64,000 bases of DNA, from IMG/VR virus record IMGVR_UViG_3300036766_000988, positions 124,001 to 188,000 of that record, one strand, 5' to 3'. Each line of letters begins with the position of its first letter. The first letter of the stretch is position 1. This document shows, one piece after another, positions 6,721-43,429 of this stretch. Position numbers and translations under genes: made by a program. The notes under the pieces are model-generated. The model was not told the DNA's origin. It saw only the letters and a list, made by a program, of their open reading frames with translations, and did no database searches.

Positions 6721-7659
6721 TTACATCCTGGTAGACGGTCGATGCTGATGATGTCCATGTGTACCTCCGTCCTGGCTTACACCATCCAAGACGAGTCCTA
6801 GTTGCCTTTCCATGAAGGCCTCTACCGGACACGCATGGTAGGGCACCACCAAGAGCCGTACGCCATGGGCAGCGCACTTGACGACCTTCTCGGCGTCTCG
6901 CTGCTGCTGAGCCTCGAAGTCGGCCGTGGATTTGCCGAACCACAAGGCAGGACGGTAATGCTGGGGGCCTTGGTACTCGAAGGCCAGCCTCAGCTCCTCG
7001 TTGTACCCATCAAGCTGTAGCCTGGTGCCACTGCTTCTGCGCAACCATTCCGGATTAGCCTTGGGGAACGGCTTGCCGAAACGTTGCTCCAACCACGCTC
7101 TGCACGAAGCTTCACCGACCAGGTCGCGACAATAAGGGCACCATCGTTTGTTGTTCCGTACGTTGTTGGGCACAGCCTCCCAGGTGTGGCCCTTGGCACA
7201 CTGCCACTGAAGCTTCGTCTCACCGTTGATGTAGGTCTCGGAGAGGCACTTTCCTCCATGGGAGGCAGCCATCTCTTGCATGAGCCCGATGGTGAGCCGG
7301 GCCTTCCCGCTACAGTGGGGGCACCAGTGCTTCTGAATCGTGTTGGGCACTGCTTCCCAGACGTGCCCCTCAGCACACTGCCATCGTAGCTTGGTAGCAG
7401 TGTTGACGTACGTGGTTGAGAGACACTTCCCGCCATGCGCAGCAGCCCGAGCTTGCATGTCCTCCAGGGTGAGAGGAGCGTTGCCGCTACAGAAAGGACA
7501 CCACTGCCGTGGGACCATACTCGGTCGAGCCTCCCAAGTGTGTCCTTCGGAGCACTGCCACGTCAGGTTGGAATGAGCCTCGACGAAGACGATAGAGAGA
7601 CACAGGCCGCCCCGGAGAGCGGCACGAGCGTGCATGTCTTGGAGCGTAAGACGACCCAT
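6721..7659 (-). CDS. zinc-ribbon repeat protein with C-terminal PD-(D/E)xK nuclease (putative freestanding homing endonuclease)
   Basis: Three ~57 aa repeats GGxCLS...WQCxxGHxWEA...WCPxC, then LQLDGYNEELRLAFEYQGPQHY. Confidence 0.8.
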   Translation of the reverse strand: MGRLTLQDMHARAALRGGLCLSIVFVEAHSNLTWQCSEGHTWEARPSMVPRQWCPFCSGNAPLTLEDMQARAAAHGGKCLSTTYVNTATKLRWQCAEGHVWEAVPNTIQKHWCPHCSGKARLTIGLMQEMAASHGGKCLSETYINGETKLQWQCAKGHTWEAVPNNVRNNKRWCPYCRDLVGEASCRAWLEQRFGKPFPKANPEWLRRSSGTRLQLDGYNEELRLAFEYQGPQHYRPALWFGKSTADFEAQQQRDAEKVVKCAAHGVRLLVVPYHACPVEAFMERQLGLVLDGVSQDGGTHGHHQHRPSTRM

Positions 7660-7690
7660 ACCCTACGTCATTCTACCCTATCCCCGAACG

Positions 7691-7725
7691 AAAAGAGGCC
7701 CGAATCTTTCGATCCAGGCCTCTTT
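7691..7725 (-). terminator. intrinsic terminator downstream of the AAA ATPase gene
   Basis: AAAGAGGCC/GGCCTCTTT inverted repeat; inner stem with GAAA loop and a following T-run on the minus strand. Confidence 0.7.
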
Positions 7726-7744
7726 GGGGCTACAGGAAAAACCT

Positions 7745-9328
7745 TCAGTCCTCGGTCTTGACGAGCTTCAAAGCGCCGCTCTTGTTGGGGTCCGCAGCGA
7801 ACCGAGCCCGAACTCCCTCGTTCAGATCCGGATCGTACCCAACCCAGTCGATCACTTCCTTGACCTCGTCGACCATGGTCTTGAGGATGCGGGGCTTCGA
7901 CTCCAGCTCATCCGCGAGGATCGCCTCATCGAGCGTGGCCTTACCCGCCGCGAAGCTTTCGATCATCGCAGCTTTGATGCTCTGCTCGATCTCACGTCCG
8001 ACCATGCCCTGAGCCTTCTCGGAGAGCATCGCAAGATTGAAGTCCTCGATCCTCTGACCGACCTTGACGATGTGGATCTTGAGGATGTCGATGCGGTCTT
8101 CCTCCGACGGGAGGTCGAAGAAGAAACGCTGATCCATGCGGTTGACGAACTCGACCGGCAGGGTCTTGAGGCTGTTCGCCGTCATGGCGAGGCACACGGG
8201 AGCCTTGGTCTCCTGAAGCCACGTGCTCAGGATCCCGATGGTGCGGCTCGTCGTACCGGCGTCCGAGGCCCCACTCGACTGGCCGCCCGAGAGGGACTTC
8301 TCCGCTTCGTCGATCCAGACGATGCAGGGAGCGACCGCTTCGATGATCTTGAGCGCACGGTAGACGTTCGCCTCCGAATCACCGACGCCCGAGCTGCGGA
8401 GCCGACCCATCTCCAGCCCGACCACCGGGAGCCCCCAGGCGTTGCCCAGGGCCTTCGTGGTGAGGCTCTTGCCGGTACCCCAGATGCCGACGCACAGGAT
8501 GCCCTTCGGAGGCACGAGCCCGAACTGACGACCCTTCTCGCTCCACGAAAGAGCCGACTTCCGCGCCCAGTCCTTGAACCGGCCGACGCCGCCGACCGTA
8601 TCGAACGAGCACTCGTCCGTGTTGATGTACTGCACGAGGTCCGTCTTGCGGAGCTGCCGACGACGGAACTCCGAGATGTAGTCGGGGTCGATCCGCTTCG
8701 GGTTCACCGCATCCTTGCGGGTCTTCACGATGCTCTGGGCGATCGACATGTCGATTTCGTAGCTCGTGAGCCCCTTGAAGTGCTTGGCGGAGTCCTTCGG
8801 AGGCGTCATCCCGAGGTAACCGCAGGCCTCTTCGACGGTCGAGAGGATCTCTTCCGAGGAAAGCCCGTTGTCGTGAACGACCTCGATGTAGCGCGAGAGC
8901 TTCTCGGGCACGACCTTGCGGGCGCCGACGAAGATCAGAAGCTTGATCGTCCGGATGTCGTTGTGGACTTGGTGGATGATGTTGAGGATGCGCCGCTGGA
9001 CGTGGGGATCGTTGAGGTAGCGCTCTGGGTCCGTGATGACGTAGAAGTTCTGGTCGTCCTTCGGGTCGTCCTTGTAGACCTGGATGAGCGCAGTGTGGAT
9101 GTCCGCCGCGTCACGGTTCTCCTGGTGGAGACGCGAACCCCAATCCTTGATGAGCTGGTTGAGCGGGACCAGACCGAGCGCCGCATTGAAGACCCACACG
9201 CGATCGGCGAGCTTCTTCAAGGTGTCGCGAAGCGTGATCAAGAAGCGGTCTTCCTCGTCGGTGACGAAGTAGATGCACCGCGACAGGCTTCGGAGGTGGA
9301 ACAGCAGCTCTTCGTTCGTCTTGGCCAT
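7745..9328 (-). CDS. Ycf46-family AAA+ ATPase
   Basis: Degenerate N-terminal AAA-like domain; active domain with GIWGTGKS, IVWIDEAEK, MTANSLKTLPVEF..RMD..FFFDLP. Confidence 0.88.
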   Translation of the reverse strand: MAKTNEELLFHLRSLSRCIYFVTDEEDRFLITLRDTLKKLADRVWVFNAALGLVPLNQLIKDWGSRLHQENRDAADIHTALIQVYKDDPKDDQNFYVITDPERYLNDPHVQRRILNIIHQVHNDIRTIKLLIFVGARKVVPEKLSRYIEVVHDNGLSSEEILSTVEEACGYLGMTPPKDSAKHFKGLTSYEIDMSIAQSIVKTRKDAVNPKRIDPDYISEFRRRQLRKTDLVQYINTDECSFDTVGGVGRFKDWARKSALSWSEKGRQFGLVPPKGILCVGIWGTGKSLTTKALGNAWGLPVVGLEMGRLRSSGVGDSEANVYRALKIIEAVAPCIVWIDEAEKSLSGGQSSGASDAGTTSRTIGILSTWLQETKAPVCLAMTANSLKTLPVEFVNRMDQRFFFDLPSEEDRIDILKIHIVKVGQRIEDFNLAMLSEKAQGMVGREIEQSIKAAMIESFAAGKATLDEAILADELESKPRILKTMVDEVKEVIDWVGYDPDLNEGVRARFAADPNKSGALKLVKTED

Positions 9329-9475
9329 GATCGTTTCTGTATCCTCGTGATCCTAGTACACCGCTTGAGGCTTGTTTTCAGCCAGCTTTTGCCGCTACAA
9401 ACACGAACGCCCGGCCCATGTGGACCGGGCGTCGAGTCCGGGGATCAAGGGCTGATCGTCAGCCCATCACGCACC

Positions 9476-9805
9476 TCAGCCCATCGCGCACATCAGCACG
9501 ATGTTGCCCTGCTGATCGACGACGCGGCTCTCGATGGAGATGCCCTGCTTCATGCACTCCTGGCGGTACTTGCTCTCGCCGTACGCCTGCTTGAGGACGC
9601 CGAGCGCCTCCGACGTGTGGCCGTAGTCGGAATCACCCGTGATGCGGCCCGACCGGAGGTCGAGCGTCGCGTTGTTGAGCTTGCCCGACGTGAAGCGGAG
9701 GCTGTCGTTCCCCTGCTCGACGTAGGAGATGCCCGCCGTCTTGCACGCCTGAATGGCGAGCGTCTTGTCCTTGATCTCGGTGTCGGTGGTTACTCGGTGG
9801 CTCAT
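9476..9805 (-). CDS. DUF1257 (Ycf35-like) protein
   Basis: MSHRVTTDTEIKDKTLAIQAC N-terminus, LKQAYG..., size and position next to the Ycf46-type ATPase. Confidence 0.7.
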   Translation of the reverse strand: MSHRVTTDTEIKDKTLAIQACKTAGISYVEQGNDSLRFTSGKLNNATLDLRSGRITGDSDYGHTSEALGVLKQAYGESKYRQECMKQGISIESRVVDQQGNIVLMCAMG

Positions 9806-9847
9806 GTCTCGTGCCTCTTCCTCTGTGGTGGCCCGGAGGCCGGTTGG

Positions 9848-10030
9848 TCAGCCTTCCCCGGAGATTTCGTGAACGGTGTCGCCCTCGGGCCCGATGTGCT
9901 CATCCGACTCCTGGCGCCCGACCGCGTTCGTCACCTTGTAGATCGACGAGCACAGATGCTCTCCTCGATCGAGAACCTCGGTGACGATCTTGCCGTTCTT
10001 GTCGATGACTGCTTTGAACTTCATGGCCAT
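9848..10030 (-). CDS. DUF2997 protein
   Basis: FKAVIDKNGKIVTEVLDRGEHLCSSI...LG-like pattern, ~60 aa, immediately upstream of DUF1257. Confidence 0.62.
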   Translation of the reverse strand: MAMKFKAVIDKNGKIVTEVLDRGEHLCSSIYKVTNAVGRQESDEHIGPEGDTVHEISGEG

Positions 10031-10108
10031 GGCGCTTGGGTCTCCTGTGGATGTTTGCGTCCTTGCCCCTAACCTATACACCGGTTCCGCGTCCAGACTT
10101 CAGAACGT

Positions 10109-30375: not shown

Positions 30376-30693
30376 TTAGTAGGCGCCGAGCTTGTCCCAC
30401 CAGACGCGGGGCTGCTTGCGGGACTTGCGGGGAGCGCGGATGGCCACCGGGGGCGGCGAGGTGCCCTGAACCGCCAGCACCTTGCCGGACAGCACGGTCT
30501 GCTGACGGAACGCTTCGAGGTGCTTGCACGAGCGGTTCATCGGATGGTTCTTCTGGAACCGCCAGCTTGGACACGTGCAGTAGATGTTGCCGTCCTTGCC
30601 CAGACGAACCTCGTGAACGTGCAGCGGGTTCGACTTCGAGGCGAAGGTGGCGAGGAGCGTGGGGCGAAAGACTGGAGTCGTCGTCTTGTCCAT
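30376..30693 (-). CDS. SWIM zinc-finger protein
   Basis: HEVRLGKDGNIYCTCPSW...CKHL; class A promoter. Confidence 0.75.
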   Translation of the reverse strand: MDKTTTPVFRPTLLATFASKSNPLHVHEVRLGKDGNIYCTCPSWRFQKNHPMNRSCKHLEAFRQQTVLSGKVLAVQGTSPPPVAIRAPRKSRKQPRVWWDKLGAY

Positions 30694-30891: not shown

Positions 30892-31089
30892 TTACTCGAC
30901 CTCGCTCTGCATGTCCGCCAGAGCCGCCTTGAGGCGAGCCGGGACGTCCTTGCCCGCGGTGGACATGAGAAGGGCGGTCATGGTGATGCCCTCGATCTTG
31001 GCGAGCAGCCGCACCTGACGGGCGAGCTTCTCGGGAAGCGAGATCGAGAGGATGGTGACCTTGGAAGGGGAGCCGGTAGAGGTGTCCAT
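30892..31089 (-). CDS. ribbon-helix-helix (CopG-like) regulator
   Basis: ILSISLPEKLARQVRLLAKIEGITMTALL; class A promoter 6 nt before the ATG. Confidence 0.65.
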   Translation of the reverse strand: MDTSTGSPSKVTILSISLPEKLARQVRLLAKIEGITMTALLMSTAGKDVPARLKAALADMQSEVE

Positions 31090-31316
31090 GGCCCTACTAG
31101 GGCTCTGAACCCGAAGGTTCAGCCTCAAATCGACCCTGTTACTTTCGTGACATTACGTTGCACGAAAGTCGCTAAACTCCGGGCCCCGTTGGCACGGCGA
31201 TTTCCCAACGTTTTGGCACATGGGCCGAACCATTATGACGCACGGCCCATTCGGGCGCAGAGCCCTTAGCCCTCTAATTCCTGGGGGGTCCGGAGGCCGC
31301 ATAAGACTTTCGTCGG

Positions 31317-31955
31317 TCACTCCGAGGCAGCCCGTAGCTTCGCTCGCCGGGCGTAGATCTTCTGCCAACCGGGAGGCAGAGCTGCCCAAGCCTGACGCTC
31401 TTCGGATTCTGCCTGAGCCTGGGACTGCTTCTGAACCCGTAGTCGGTTTTGAGCGGCGACCAGCTTGGCCCTAGTCTCTTCCGAGACTACCCGTCCCATG
31501 CTGGCAGCTTCGCGTCGCTTTCGACCTTCTTCGGATAACCTGAACCTCTGTCGCGGTCTCGACAGCTTCGCTCGGGTTTCAGCGGACGGTCGGAGTCCCT
31601 GGTGAGCCTTCGACATCTTGGCTCGGGCTTCTGGGGTGAGCTTCCAACCGGCCATGGCCGACCATCCCCCTGGGCTCATGTTGAACCCGAGAGCAGGGTC
31701 AGTAGAGCCGAAGTGGGCAACCCACCACAGCTCGGCCTCGTTGGCTTCCTCCAACGTCTCGACCCTCTCTAGGACTTCGGCGGTGAAAGTCTCTGGACCG
31801 AACTCTCGGATCGCCTAGTGGAAGCGTCCTCGACTCCCTCGCTTGAGAGCATCCCCCTTATGCCGAGTCCACCGCTTCTTGGTTGTCTTGGAGGTCTGAC
31901 CAACGTAGCGACGCTGGCTAGCCTGGTGGACGTGGCAGTAGATCTCGAACGGCAT
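31317..31955 (-). pseudogene. GIY-YIG/NUMOD3 endonuclease interrupted by one in-frame TAG
   Basis: FEIYCHVH..RRYVGQT..RW..H..GRFH*AIREFGPETFTAEVLE...GFNM..GG; TAG at 31815..31817, same frame on both sides. Confidence 0.8.
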
Positions 31956-31975: not shown

Positions 31976-32305
31976 CTAGTAGCCGAAGTCGTACGCCACG
32001 ATCCGGCCTGCACGGGTCAGCCCTACTTGCTGGCAGTCGACGTAGTCCGCCCACCTGGGTTGCGCCTCGTCAGGAACGCTGGTGTCGACCCGCTCCATGA
32101 CGAGCCAGCCGTTCTTCAACAACCTGCACCTAGCGTACAGGACCCCGTTCTGGTCCGGCCCACGACCCCACCGCCTTGAGAGCCGGGCTTCGCGGCTGTT
32201 GTCCGCCAGGCCGTAGTCATTGAGCGGCACCTTGATGACCCACCGGCCGTCTGCGTAACAGGCTCGGCTGTAACCACTGCCCAACAAGGTTCCCCTGGGT
32301 TCCAT
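31976..32305 (-). CDS. minimal protein-kinase-like protein, paralog 1
   Basis: GSGYSR Gly loop, VIK, alphaC Glu, LVME hinge, terminal VAYDFGY. Confidence 0.55.
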   Translation of the reverse strand: MEPRGTLLGSGYSRACYADGRWVIKVPLNDYGLADNSREARLSRRWGRGPDQNGVLYARCRLLKNGWLVMERVDTSVPDEAQPRWADYVDCQQVGLTRAGRIVAYDFGY

Positions 32306-32340
32306 CCTGGGACTACTGCGCGAACTTGGGAAGTTCAACC

Positions 32341-32832
32341 TCATCCGTCTTCTCGGCGGATCGTGACCTGACCCTTTCGAATCACGACAGCTTCGAACCC
32401 GACCCCGTGGTCAAGGTACTCGTTGGCGGCGTCGATGCAGGCACAGCAGTAGGGCGCCAGGGCTTCGAAGCTCAGCGGGAAGTCCGCCTCCACCTGTGCC
32501 CCCTCGTGGAAGAACCGTTGGTCCTCTCGGACGAACGCCAACTGGGCACCCTCGATGGTATTATGGTACCGTTGGCTCCACAGAAGCTTCCTAGCTTCAT
32601 CTGCCTTCCAGCACTCGGGGCAAATCCAGTCCCAACACAGCCGTTGGTCGAACCGGGCCGGATCAGGTCTGAACAAGGTGGGCCGGTTGAACTGCCCACC
32701 AAACCTACCAGGGCAGTAGTGGCAATAGGGCGGCGGGTCGTCTTCGACATGATCGGAGCAACGGTAGTCTGGGCGAGGCCTGCCTGGGCTCTTGGGTTGT
32801 TCTCGCCACAAACTACGGAGCCACTCAAGCAT
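32341..32832 (-). CDS. Cys-rich hypothetical protein
   Basis: GGTGTA motif 10 nt before the ATG. Confidence 0.55.
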   Translation of the reverse strand: MLEWLRSLWREQPKSPGRPRPDYRCSDHVEDDPPPYCHYCPGRFGGQFNRPTLFRPDPARFDQRLCWDWICPECWKADEARKLLWSQRYHNTIEGAQLAFVREDQRFFHEGAQVEADFPLSFEALAPYCCACIDAANEYLDHGVGFEAVVIRKGQVTIRREDG

Positions 32833-32852
32833 CTAGTTCAGTACACCGCCCT

Positions 32853-33245
32853 TCACCCGAAGTCGTAGGCGACGATCCTGCCGTCTCGGGCTCTCCCTAC
32901 TTGAGCGCCTTCCACCGCCAAGGCCCACCAAGGAAGCTGCGACCTCTCCAGCATCCTCACCCGTTCCATCACGAGCCAGCCGCAAGGAAGCAACCGACAG
33001 CGGGCGTACCGGACTCCGTTGGAATCAGGGCGATCTCGGAACTCTCGTGACAGGTCAGCTTCCCTGCGGTTGTCTTGGAAGCCCAGCTCGTTCCCCAGTC
33101 CACGTTTGCTGTAGAGCCGACCCACAGGATCGCGTTCGATCCAAAAGTCGACGGAGGTCATCAACGGTACCTTGATGACCCAGGGGCCGTCCGCGTAGCA
33201 GGCTCGGGTGCAGCCTTGACCCAACAAGGTCCCGCGGGGTTCCAT
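32853..33245 (-). CDS. minimal protein-kinase-like protein, paralog 2
   Basis: MEPRGTLLGQGCTRACYADGPWVIKVP...LVMERV...IVAYDFG, clearly homologous to 31976..32305. Confidence 0.55.
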   Translation of the reverse strand: MEPRGTLLGQGCTRACYADGPWVIKVPLMTSVDFWIERDPVGRLYSKRGLGNELGFQDNRREADLSREFRDRPDSNGVRYARCRLLPCGWLVMERVRMLERSQLPWWALAVEGAQVGRARDGRIVAYDFG

Positions 33246-33622
33246 GACCAGCTATTGGCCTGGCCTTTGAGTCCAAGCGGCTTCCAGGACGGCGACGTCC
33301 AGCTCAAAATCCTTCGCTACCTGCCGGAGCAAATGTGGGTAGGCCTCATTCCAGGCCTCAAGCCCCTCGCGGACAACGATGCAGAAAGTCGCGCTAGCCA
33401 TATACTGGACCGCCCGTTGCCGGTGTTCTTCGACGAAGGCAGTTCCGTACAGGAGGACGTGACGCGACCACCAACGTGGCTGGGGACGTTTCAGGTCACA
33501 ACCGCTACACGTCCACTGGTGCTCGTCATGGAGACGCCCGATGCAGCGACAAGCCCAGCGGGTGTCGGCCCACATTCCTCGTCCACGGGTCATCTTTGCA
33601 CGAGCTTCGATGGACATGGGCT

Positions 33623-41815: not shown

Positions 41816-42109
41816 TCATTTGGGCACTCCGTCGTCGGTCAACGACGCAGGGGCATGTCCGCAGTAGGGGCACGCTCCCACGGCCGGGAACCGTCCGGCG
41901 AGAAGGTCATCGAGCGACACGTTGACGAATCTCGACAGACGGAACGCGAGCAGCGGGGTGACCGTGCGGCCCTTCACGATGTTCGTGAGCGTCCTCGGCT
42001 GGAACCGCAGCGTCTCTGCGAGCGGGATCCAGCCGCCGAACCGCGTCCGAAGGAACCGCAAGGCGGCACGTACCCGCACTTGCTCTTCCCGCGTGAGATC
42101 AAGGTTCAT
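41816..42109 (-). CDS. XRE-like HTH protein with C-terminal CxxC
   Basis: ATG overlaps the transposase stop (TGATG); LAETLRFQPRTLTNIVKG...LSRFVNVSLDDLL; CPYC. Confidence 0.65.
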   Translation of the reverse strand: MNLDLTREEQVRVRAALRFLRTRFGGWIPLAETLRFQPRTLTNIVKGRTVTPLLAFRLSRFVNVSLDDLLAGRFPAVGACPYCGHAPASLTDDGVPK

Positions 42110-43356
42110 CACGAGCCTCCCGCCGCCATCAACGGCGGCTCGCCCCAGAACGACGCGTCGATCCCCAACTCGTAGATCGACTGCACCAGCACACGGATGT
42201 TGTGGCAGAGCACCTTCATGTAAATTTCGCTGACCTGCCCCTCGAAGGACTTCGCCCGTACCGAGGATCCGAGCACGCGCTTCACCGAACTGAACGTCGC
42301 CTCGGTCAAGCTGCGCTTGTGGTAGTGCTCCAAGAACGTCGGCCGGTTGTACGTGTAGAACGCGAACAAGCGGTTCCACAGGTCATCGTTGGCGCTCGCC
42401 TTCGAGTTCGACTTGAAGGGGACGAACGGCTCCGCGCCCGCCTTCACGATGGCCTTAAAGTTCTCCCGCGAAAGGTAGCCCATGTCGGCCGAGACCTCGC
42501 GCATCGCGAAGTTCTTCCCGGTCTGTTCGATGAGCCCAGGAAGGAACGGTGAGTCATGCGCGTTGCCTGGCGTGACCTCGGCGCCGGTGATGATCTGCGT
42601 CGTCACGCCGATCATCATGTGGAGCTTGAGCCACTTCTTCTCCCTACGATCCTTCCCCCACTTCTGATCGTGCCACCTGACGTAGCCCTTCGTGGCGATC
42701 CCGGTGCCATCGGCGGCGAAGTCCACCTCGACGGTGCGGAGCGGCTTTGCGCTTTCTTCGATCAGACGACGAAGCACCGGCACGGTCTCGGGCTCCCGCA
42801 TGATGCGGAAGACAGTGTTCGGATGCGGCACCACGTCGGTGAGGCCGCGCTCTTGACACGAACGGATGTCGCTCACGGCGCGGTCGCCGGAGAACAGCGT
42901 GAAGGTCTTGACCCCTGCGGCGAAGATCACGTCGGAAAGCGGGAGCGACGGGCGGCCGTTGCCCTTGTAGCAGGGCTGTTGGACGCCGTCGCAGAGCGCA
43001 CGGAGAAGCTTCTCGAAGATGTCCTTCTCGTTCATCCTCGCCTTGCGGTAGGCAGGCCAGTTCTGCGCGTACGTGATGCGCTTCTCTTCGGTCACGACGT
43101 TCCCGTCCGGCAACGTGATCTCACGGCGGACGATCAAGACCGCGTAGAGGTGCTTGCAGCGGTGCCCTGCCCCATGCTCTTCCGCGTCCGGGCACGAGCA
43201 GGTGCCCGCCACGGGATCCACGAAGTAGCTCCCCGAGTTCTTAGACTGCGAGGGAACGAGGTATTTGCCTTCGAGAACCTGCCGGATCTGCTTGCCCTTA
43301 CCTTGCACGATGGCGAGGCCGCGTTGCGCTCGGTAGTCGATGGCTGCGGTATCCAT
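42109..43356 (-). mobile_element. DDE transposase (IS4/IS5-like DDE_Tnp_1 type) with N-terminal SWIM zinc finger
   Basis: CSCPD..CKH; FAADGTG, KWLKLH, HDSPFL, VSADMGY, YHKRSLTEATFSSVKR. Confidence 0.88.
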
Positions 43357-43361
43357 GTGGA

Positions 43362-43429
43362 CTAATGTTGCCACAACGTAGCAACAGTCAAGACCCGCTT
43401 GACATGTTCCTACGTTGTGGCAACATTAG
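43362..43429. promoter_or_regulatory. 20 bp perfect inverted repeat around divergent promoters
   Basis: CTAATGTTGCCACAACGTAG (43362..43381) and its exact reverse complement (43410..43429); GTCAAG/CTTGAC between them. Confidence 0.85.

Follow-up and report, generated by a model that had tools for sequence, protein, structure and literature searches.

To our knowledge, the accepted minimum of a protein-kinase-like (PKL) enzyme still includes helix αE and at least one helix beyond the DFG motif, as in OspG/NleH, HopBF1 and Ark1, whose lengths are about 160-200 amino acids (aa). Here we describe a pair of paralogous genes carried by a stretch of 64,000 nucleotides (nt), hereafter the window, which corresponds to positions 124,001 to 188,000 of the IMG/VR virus record IMGVR_UViG_3300036766_000988. 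Their products, of 109 and 130 aa, are predicted to adopt the N-terminal part of the PKL fold and stop at the DFG motif itself. These mini-kinases belong to a large, unnamed family of phage proteins (PHROG 4301) with a core of about 105 residues. We favour, with a probability of roughly 55%, the reading that they are minimal Mg-ATP-binding phosphotransferase modules that probably need a partner from the host or the phage.

Several described kinases provide a frame for this proposal. NleH and OspG are active though they are devoid of subdomains VIII-XI (PMC12756638), and OspG is active only upon binding of E2~ubiquitin (PMC13395416). These enzymes are secreted bacterial effectors, whereas the mini-kinases are phage proteins. 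Phage kinases are known to disarm bacterial defences, as exemplified by T7K, which combines a full kinase domain with a shut-off/DNA-binding domain (PMC13645617). Giant phages commonly carry the present kinase-like family, which is therefore a candidate tool for host takeover or anti-defence. The family has hitherto gone unrecognized, all its members being annotated as hypothetical. What appears to be new here, judging from the structural models, is an extreme PKL variant of about 105 residues as against 160-200 for the smallest characterized ones. An abundant family under selection that keeps every ATP and Mg contact but has no helical C-terminal lobe (C-lobe) would show the smallest core to which the fold can be reduced, and a natural protein of this type would make the need for a C-lobe directly testable. 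Were a protein of about 105 residues indeed a working kinase, no smaller PKL enzyme would be known.

Two paralogous genes ending at the DFG motif

The first-pass annotation of the window, made from the letters and their translations, had described two minus-strand paralogs displaying kinase landmarks in kinase order. The open reading frames (ORFs) and their translations bear this description out: LGSGYSR/LGQGCTR, VIK, EA, LVME, YVDCQQVG/AVEGAQVG and IVAYDFG(Y) follow one another in paralogs 1 and 2, respectively, a pattern that is far beyond chance. Paralog 1 (P0003, 109 aa followed by a TAG stop) occupies positions 31976..32305 of the minus strand. The longest ORF at this place, of 122 aa (P0001, 31976-32344, minus), uses an alternative upstream ATG at 32344 that shares nucleotides with the stop of the ORF before it. 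The ATG at 32305 is favoured as the start: it is the exact point at which the DNA becomes similar to that of paralog 2, and the recorded gene call is also of 109 aa. Paralog 2 (P0002, 130 aa followed by a TGA stop) occupies positions 32853..33245, likewise on the minus strand.

The landmark residues can be placed precisely on this strand. In paralog 1, the β3 lysine (Lys25 of VIK) is encoded at 32231..32233, the αC glutamate (Glu39, inside a predicted helix spanning residues 30-46) at 32189..32191, the compressed catalytic loop Asp90-Cys-Gln-Gln93 at 32027..32038, and Asp106 of AYDFG, three residues before the C-terminus, at 31988..31990. Their counterparts in paralog 2 are Lys25 of VIK (33171..33173) and Glu62 (33060..33062, inside a predicted helix spanning residues 51-69), both in invariant alignment columns, the catalytic-loop equivalent Glu112-Gly-Ala-Gln115 (32901..32912), placed by its alignment column and carrying Glu for Asp, and Asp128 of AYDFG (32862..32864), which the translation and alignment place two residues before the C-terminus.

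The two proteins share 54% identity (E 6e-37) and an unusual N-terminus. At the DNA level (31976-32320 compared with 32853-33260), their identity is about 84% over the initial 85 nt, counted from the ATG, and distinctly lower beyond. The shared N-terminus and the 5' identity fit a duplication within the lineage, perhaps with 5' gene conversion; the high 5' identity may equally reflect uneven constraint. A quick family tree did not place the paralogs as sisters, at a resolution too poor to decide sisterhood. Paralog 2 is distinguished by a 23-residue insert that follows VIKVPL, between strand β3 and helix αC, and by the Glu that replaces the catalytic-loop Asp of the family; from the sequence, these two changes suggest functional divergence.

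A phage protein family with a common C-terminus

A phmmer search of 1.84 billion cluster representatives returned 686 proteins at E≤1e-3, hence at least 686 homologous clusters, 191 of them at E≤1e-10. Almost all of these homologs are 105-200 aa long and the match extends to their final residues. Among the best matches, 155 proteins, almost exclusively homologs, were tallied, and about three quarters of them (115) terminate 0-5 residues beyond D[YF]G; the abrupt stop at DFG that had been noticed in the pair is a trait of the family. A minority of the tallied proteins carry a tail of 20-50 residues past DFG, of the type A-x-D-x-x-E-R-x-x-W-E. In a tailed subgroup (P0065, P0073, P0080, P0120, P0126, P0131 and P0151), the tail follows D[YF]A and contains a conserved D-[IL]-x-E-R-x-x-W-E-x-x-[WL]. 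This tail may form a single helix packing in the place of the C-lobe, and it probably accounts for the additional positions 169-225 of the PHROG 4301 profile.

This common stopping place bears on the possibility that the two genes are what truncation or decay has left of full-length kinase genes, cut for instance by an adjacent homing endonuclease. A GIY-YIG/NUMOD3 endonuclease gene does lie directly downstream of paralog 1, and a full-length kinase-like ORF is found elsewhere in the phage. Nevertheless, the same endpoint recurs in hundreds of diverse homologs, the core residues are invariant and no C-lobe-like sequence follows either gene in frame. The hundreds of homologs ending at DFG exclude truncated pseudogenes, and an origin as remnants has next to no chance of being correct.

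PHROG 4301, a group of unknown function, was the sole library match of the paralogs (E 3.8e-9 and 2e-6 for paralogs 1 and 2, respectively), over profile positions 37-168 of 225. We consider this match modest because the profile, run against all six frames of the genome, returned nothing at E≤1. A profile search of 5.8 billion proteins gathered 202 members; among the 120 listed, none carried a Pfam domain or bore any name but 'hypothetical protein', and many originated from contigs of 140-660 kb. Sub-threshold matches to YrbL-PhoP_reg were obtained for 3 out of 132 members (best E 0.004) and for none of the others. A scan of viral contigs with the family pattern matched 14 stretches, none of which was confirmed. 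P0124, a 6001-aa match with 14 matched stretches, was discarded as spurious since it is a repetitive adhesin-like protein.

Gene context was taken from contigs encoding homologs and from GenBank phages. Homologs reside in jumbo phages as well as on the long contigs. The four homolog-bearing contigs inspected carry the gene within arrays of small unannotated genes, which are typical of huge phages. In GenBank, homologs annotated as hypothetical are encoded by Xanthomonas phage Xoo-sp13, seven PA5oct-type Wroclawvirus phages of Pseudomonas aeruginosa and Ralstonia phage RSP15; these homologs also terminate at DFG, examples being Xoo-sp13 gp30, the PA5oct-type Deifobo_0331 and RSP15 ORF012. A search of the literature other than subscription journals found no paper on the family or on its GenBank accessions.

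Residues kept and parts lost

Across 132 sequences, and in the numbering of paralog 1, eight positions are invariant: G11, K25, E39, M70 (the gatekeeper position of LVME), W85, Q93, G95 and D106. Conservation reaches at least 90% for R14, V23, P27, G32, N36, A58, C60, L68, P83, D90, A104 and Y105. The β3 Lys and αC Glu of PKL proteins are present as K25 and E39. D106, in the family-wide context A-Y-D-[YF]-[GA], stands after strand β8 at the place of the metal-binding Asp of DFG. Q93 immediately precedes a predicted strand and lies 13 residues before D106, which is the usual spacing between the metal-binding Asn of kinases and the DFG Asp. The conserved loop Asp is found three, not five, residues upstream of Q93, producing D-x-x-Q-V-G and not D-x-x-x-x-N. 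This position, D90, is occupied by Asp in 128 of 132 sequences (97%) and by Glu in the other 4, and could act as the catalytic base.

Helices αD and αE are mostly absent, about 12 linker residues and a one-turn helix (P-x-W) connecting the hinge to the catalytic loop. The protein stops 0-3 residues past DFG, so that the activation segment and helices αF to αI are missing, leaving it without the helical C-lobe of PKL proteins. The kinase residues contacting ATP and Mg all seem to be retained under strong selection and the substrate-binding lobe is gone. In a typical pseudokinase, part of the set formed by the Mg-binding Asp, the catalytic-loop residue and the Lys-Glu pair has been lost. The invariant Lys, Glu, Gln and DFG Asp of the family favour a live Mg-ATP site over a decayed pseudokinase.

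Predicted fold and comparison with known kinases

The AlphaFold2 model of paralog 1, built with the 132-sequence family alignment, reached a predicted local distance difference test (pLDDT) score of 95.4 and a predicted TM-score (pTM) of 0.84, and that of paralog 2 a pLDDT of 89.3, with only the insert uncertain (about 64). In paralog 1, strands 6-10, 14-19 and 22-27 are followed by a 17-residue helix (30-46) and then by strands 60-62 and 68-71; a linker and a one-turn helix lead from there to a terminal two-strand hairpin. The model displays the five-stranded antiparallel sheet, the Gly-rich β1-β2 loop and the helix αC of a PKL N-terminal lobe (N-lobe).

Searches of the Protein Data Bank (PDB) with Foldseek returned nearly exclusively PKL proteins among the top rows, including Rio2, APH(2''), CDK6, NleH1/2, OspG, PRPK and PknB. 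Probabilities for paralog 1 were 0.9-1.0, with a query TM-score (TMq) of 0.42-0.58; those for paralog 2 were weaker (0.33-0.99), with SAICAR synthetase rows among the matches. Against 48,161 representative chains, VIA-align gave Z-scores of 5.3-7.7 for paralog 1, residues 1-109 of which span the region from the start of the N-lobe to DFG in PknB (4-159), CDK7 (11-158) and OspG (26-160). Sequence evidence points in the same direction: the family profile matched the SteC N-lobe (E 3e-4) and APH(2'') (E 4e-4) among PDB sequences, covering the G-loop, VxK-P and the αC Glu, and the nearest Pfam-bearing clusters according to a language model were Phage_T7_kinase (0.91) and Kinase-PolyVal (0.89). In BFVD, a continuum of small uncharacterized phage kinase-like proteins was encountered. 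The check proposed with the first-pass annotation, a comparison of AlphaFold models with the PKL fold by Foldseek, thus came out in its favour for both proteins, and the part of a kinase that follows DFG is truly absent. That the fold is PKL and the family real is, in our view, almost certain.

OspG, NleH1 and NleH2 (PDB 4q5h, 4bvu, 4lrj and 4o96) resemble the phage family in having a PKL fold pared down after DFG. They align to paralog 1 with Z 5.8-6.0 and Foldseek probabilities of 0.93-0.98, the model covering their N-lobe up to DFG. They keep, however, αE and about 30 helical residues after DFG in kinase domains of 160-170 aa, whereas the phage proteins have neither in about 105 aa. The family profile found no sequence match to OspG/NleH among PDB sequences. 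The similarity is of the general PKL level only, and the absence of αE and of post-DFG helices sets the phage family apart from the OspG/NleH type.

The best PDB match of the family profile, SteC fragment 202-375 (PDB 8JBI), shares with the phage proteins the stretch G-x-G...V-[IV]-K-[IV]-P-x-N-x-x-G...N..E, and the crystallized fragment also terminates just past a DFG-like motif. The match is nevertheless limited to about 50 N-lobe residues, and full SteC possesses αE, αF, αG and an activation segment, which its activity requires (PMC13395416). Profile matches to APH(2'') had E 4e-4 to 5e-2; they lie in the N-lobe and take in the K-[FV]-P motif. Structurally, paralog 1 aligned to APH(2'') with Z 7.3 and a Foldseek probability of 1.0. 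Unlike the phage proteins, APH enzymes are about 300 aa long and have both a complete core C-lobe and a helical subdomain for substrate binding; nothing points to aminoglycoside binding by the phage proteins.

The T7 gp0.7 kinase (Phage_T7_kinase, PHROG 2828) and Kinase-PolyVal (PF18762) are phage-borne PKL kinases too. The hhalign comparison of gp0.7 with the family was restricted to the G-loop and VIK (probability 10%, 37 columns), and the two belong to different PHROGs; a search of this genome for Kinase-PolyVal found no match. Finally, the Ark1 RNA kinase (8yv5, 7vnx), HopBF1 (6pwd), Bud32/PRPK and Rio1/Rio2 align from the N-lobe to DFG with Z 5.6-6.5. They comprise 170-270 aa, with αE and at least one post-DFG helix, and no sequence similarity to the family was detected. 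If the models are right, the family is the most reduced PKL domain seen in this analysis, consisting of a full N-lobe, a short linker, a compressed loop and a DFG hairpin.

Proposed mechanism and alternatives

In the mechanism that we favour, the mini-kinase would be a phosphotransferase that is encoded in an array of small accessory genes and produced at an early stage of infection, and it would clamp Mg-ATP between its two sheets in the manner of a kinase. Lacking a substrate-binding C-lobe, it would most likely either act on whatever enters the exposed active site or require docking in order to act. In the second case, a host or phage protein would provide the missing surface and present the substrate, as E2~ubiquitin does for OspG. 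The requirement of OspG for E2~ubiquitin and the inactivity of SteC fragments that end at DFG favour a partner-dependent module. The parts of this proposal deserve different degrees of confidence: the binding of nucleotide and metal is likely, while catalysis of phosphotransfer falls slightly short of an even bet. A more ambitious version would have the protein of about 105 residues be a working kinase, either alone with an open, promiscuous site or with a host protein as surrogate C-lobe, and be widely used by jumbo/mega-phages for host takeover or counter-defence; we put it forward tentatively and with more doubt than confidence.

A number of observations weigh against this proposal. The catalytic loop is non-canonical, D-x-x-Q being devoid of both HRD and Asn, and in paralog 2 the loop Asp is replaced by Glu. 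Neither paralog matched any Pfam or NCBIfam model at E≤1, kinase models included, nor did PADLOC report any. SteC, the closest analogue studied by experiment, speaks against activity as a stand-alone protein kinase: its fragments 202-375 and 210-375, which end just past the DFG-like motif, are inactive, and its αF/αG region is required for substrate binding and catalysis (PMC13395416). As to the fold, the best Foldseek E is only about 2e-3 and the VIA-align Z remains below 8, a range that can reflect a common arrangement according to the tool. Because these scores are moderate, the fold argument rests on the uniformity of the match lists and on their agreement with the sequence evidence. The top VIA-align match was, in addition, SAICAR synthetase and not a kinase (Z 7.7 compared with 7.3-7.0, a statistical tie).

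This last match raises the possibility of a reduced member of the ATP-clamp group (SAICAR-synthetase/PIPK/ATP-grasp-like) performing ATP-dependent ligation or nucleotidyl transfer. The alignment with SAICAR synthetase extends over 103 residues, PurC/PAICS entries recur in both structural searches and the catalytic loop has Gln rather than Asn. On the other hand, the Z gap to the kinase rows is below 1 and counts as a tie by the rule of the tool, the family profile has no PurC match, sequence-profile matches are exclusively to kinases and phosphotransferases (SteC, APH(2''), YrbL-type), and the succession of G-loop, VxK, E, hinge, D..Q and D[YF]G is the PKL order. Membership of the ATP-clamp group consequently receives little credence from us.

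The main rival to a phosphotransferase is a non-catalytic binder of ATP or of a nucleotide-derived immune signal, a pseudoenzyme serving as a sponge, switch or decoy during infection. The absence of a substrate-binding lobe, the very small size of the protein, its location in phage accessory-gene arrays and the loss of the loop Asp in paralog 2 would all suit such a role. So would the inactive N-lobe-to-DFG fragment of SteC, for which a dimer holding ATP was proposed from the crystal structure (PMC13395416). Pure binding, however, gives little reason for the Mg-binding Asp, the Gln and the Lys-Glu pair to stay unchanged throughout 132 diverse sequences, and we hold this rival to be unlikely, though far from negligible. 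A homodimer co-fold of two copies of paralog 1 with ATP and Mg had a score of 0.00, a verdict of 'no answer' and no scored ligand information, and constitutes evidence for neither side.

The remaining alternative is a split kinase completed by a phage-encoded C-lobe protein, such as a neighbouring 163-aa ORF or another phage gene. HipS/HipT offers a precedent (PMC9325769), and a small ORF of unknown function does lie between the two copies. Comparison of 11 loci from different phages, however, showed nothing shared within 2.5-5 kb apart from the mini-kinase gene itself, and the model of paralog 1 is compact and confident on its own. Two copies within the flanks were found only at the present locus among the 11, and GenBank phages have the gene in one place each. 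Completion in trans, a possibility raised by the first-pass annotation next to action on small molecules or host defence proteins, finds no conserved candidate among the neighbours in these loci; the interpretation given there is supported as to the PKL fold and the absent C-lobe and unsupported as to a partner encoded next door. The chances of a split kinase are slim, although a distant phage gene or a host protein might still complete it.

The 163-aa ORF (32341-32832, minus), located between the paralogs, is Cys-rich with CxxC pairs, and its stop codon and the upstream ATG of paralog 1 overlap. As a C-lobe provided in trans, it was rejected: it has a single homolog (P0157, 45% identity) in 5.8 billion proteins, with no mini-kinase within 6 kb of that homolog. 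Far below threshold, the same ORF also gives matches to ADP-ribose-binding (macro) proteins, in their C-terminal part (E 1e-3; 18.6 bits, where the cut-off is 252).

Genome and gene neighbourhood

The window belongs to a virus record of 252 kb whose completeness is estimated at 53% by CheckV, which identifies the source as a jumbo phage. Its G+C content is about 61% and its source a sediment metagenome; the stretch was present only in sequencing runs of this probable source and in no RNA run. Genes for replication are found in the window, namely those for a DNA polymerase, a DnaB-like helicase, a second helicase and an exonuclease, together with a transposase-like gene. The latter (42109-43374, minus; PHROG 2262, E 7e-24) lies within the phage genome close to the replication genes. 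The pair of paralogs sits in a co-directional, minus-strand series of small genes, none of them above the Pfam cut-off. A scan for promoters and terminators gave no signal exceeding shuffled sequences.

The free-standing GIY-YIG and NUMOD3 homing endonuclease gene (31317-31954, minus) begins 22 nt past the stop of paralog 1. It was recognized by the Pfam models GIY-YIG (E 4.5e-4) and NUMOD3 (E 2e-9) and by PHROG 314, a homing endonuclease group (E 2e-12). The gene is broken by a single in-frame TAG at 31815-31817, its two halves sharing one frame; a recent nonsense mutation, a mistake of the assembly and read-through are all conceivable causes. Recoding of TAG, considered on account of this codon, was set aside: the ORFs of the window are normal under table 11 and the family stops at DFG in any case.

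Further downstream, a 78-aa ORF (30892-31128, minus) resembles a ribbon-helix-helix protein by eye and a 105-aa ORF (30376-30693, minus) shows, also by eye, a SWIM-like C-x-C...C-x-H motif; neither has a Pfam match at E≤0.01. Elsewhere in the window, two long ORFs overlap on opposite strands, one of 812 aa (7634-10072, plus), without a PHROG match at E≤1e-5, and one of 527 aa (7745-9328, minus).

Outside the window, the same phage encodes a full-length kinase-like protein of 342 aa on the minus strand (G000:C1, about 235768-236796; L014:1075-2103). It matches Pkinase below the cut-off (E 9e-5) and the N-terminal region of the PADLOC model MkoA (E 4e-16). In this protein, H-G-N replaces the kinase H-R-D and D-W-S occupies the DFG position.

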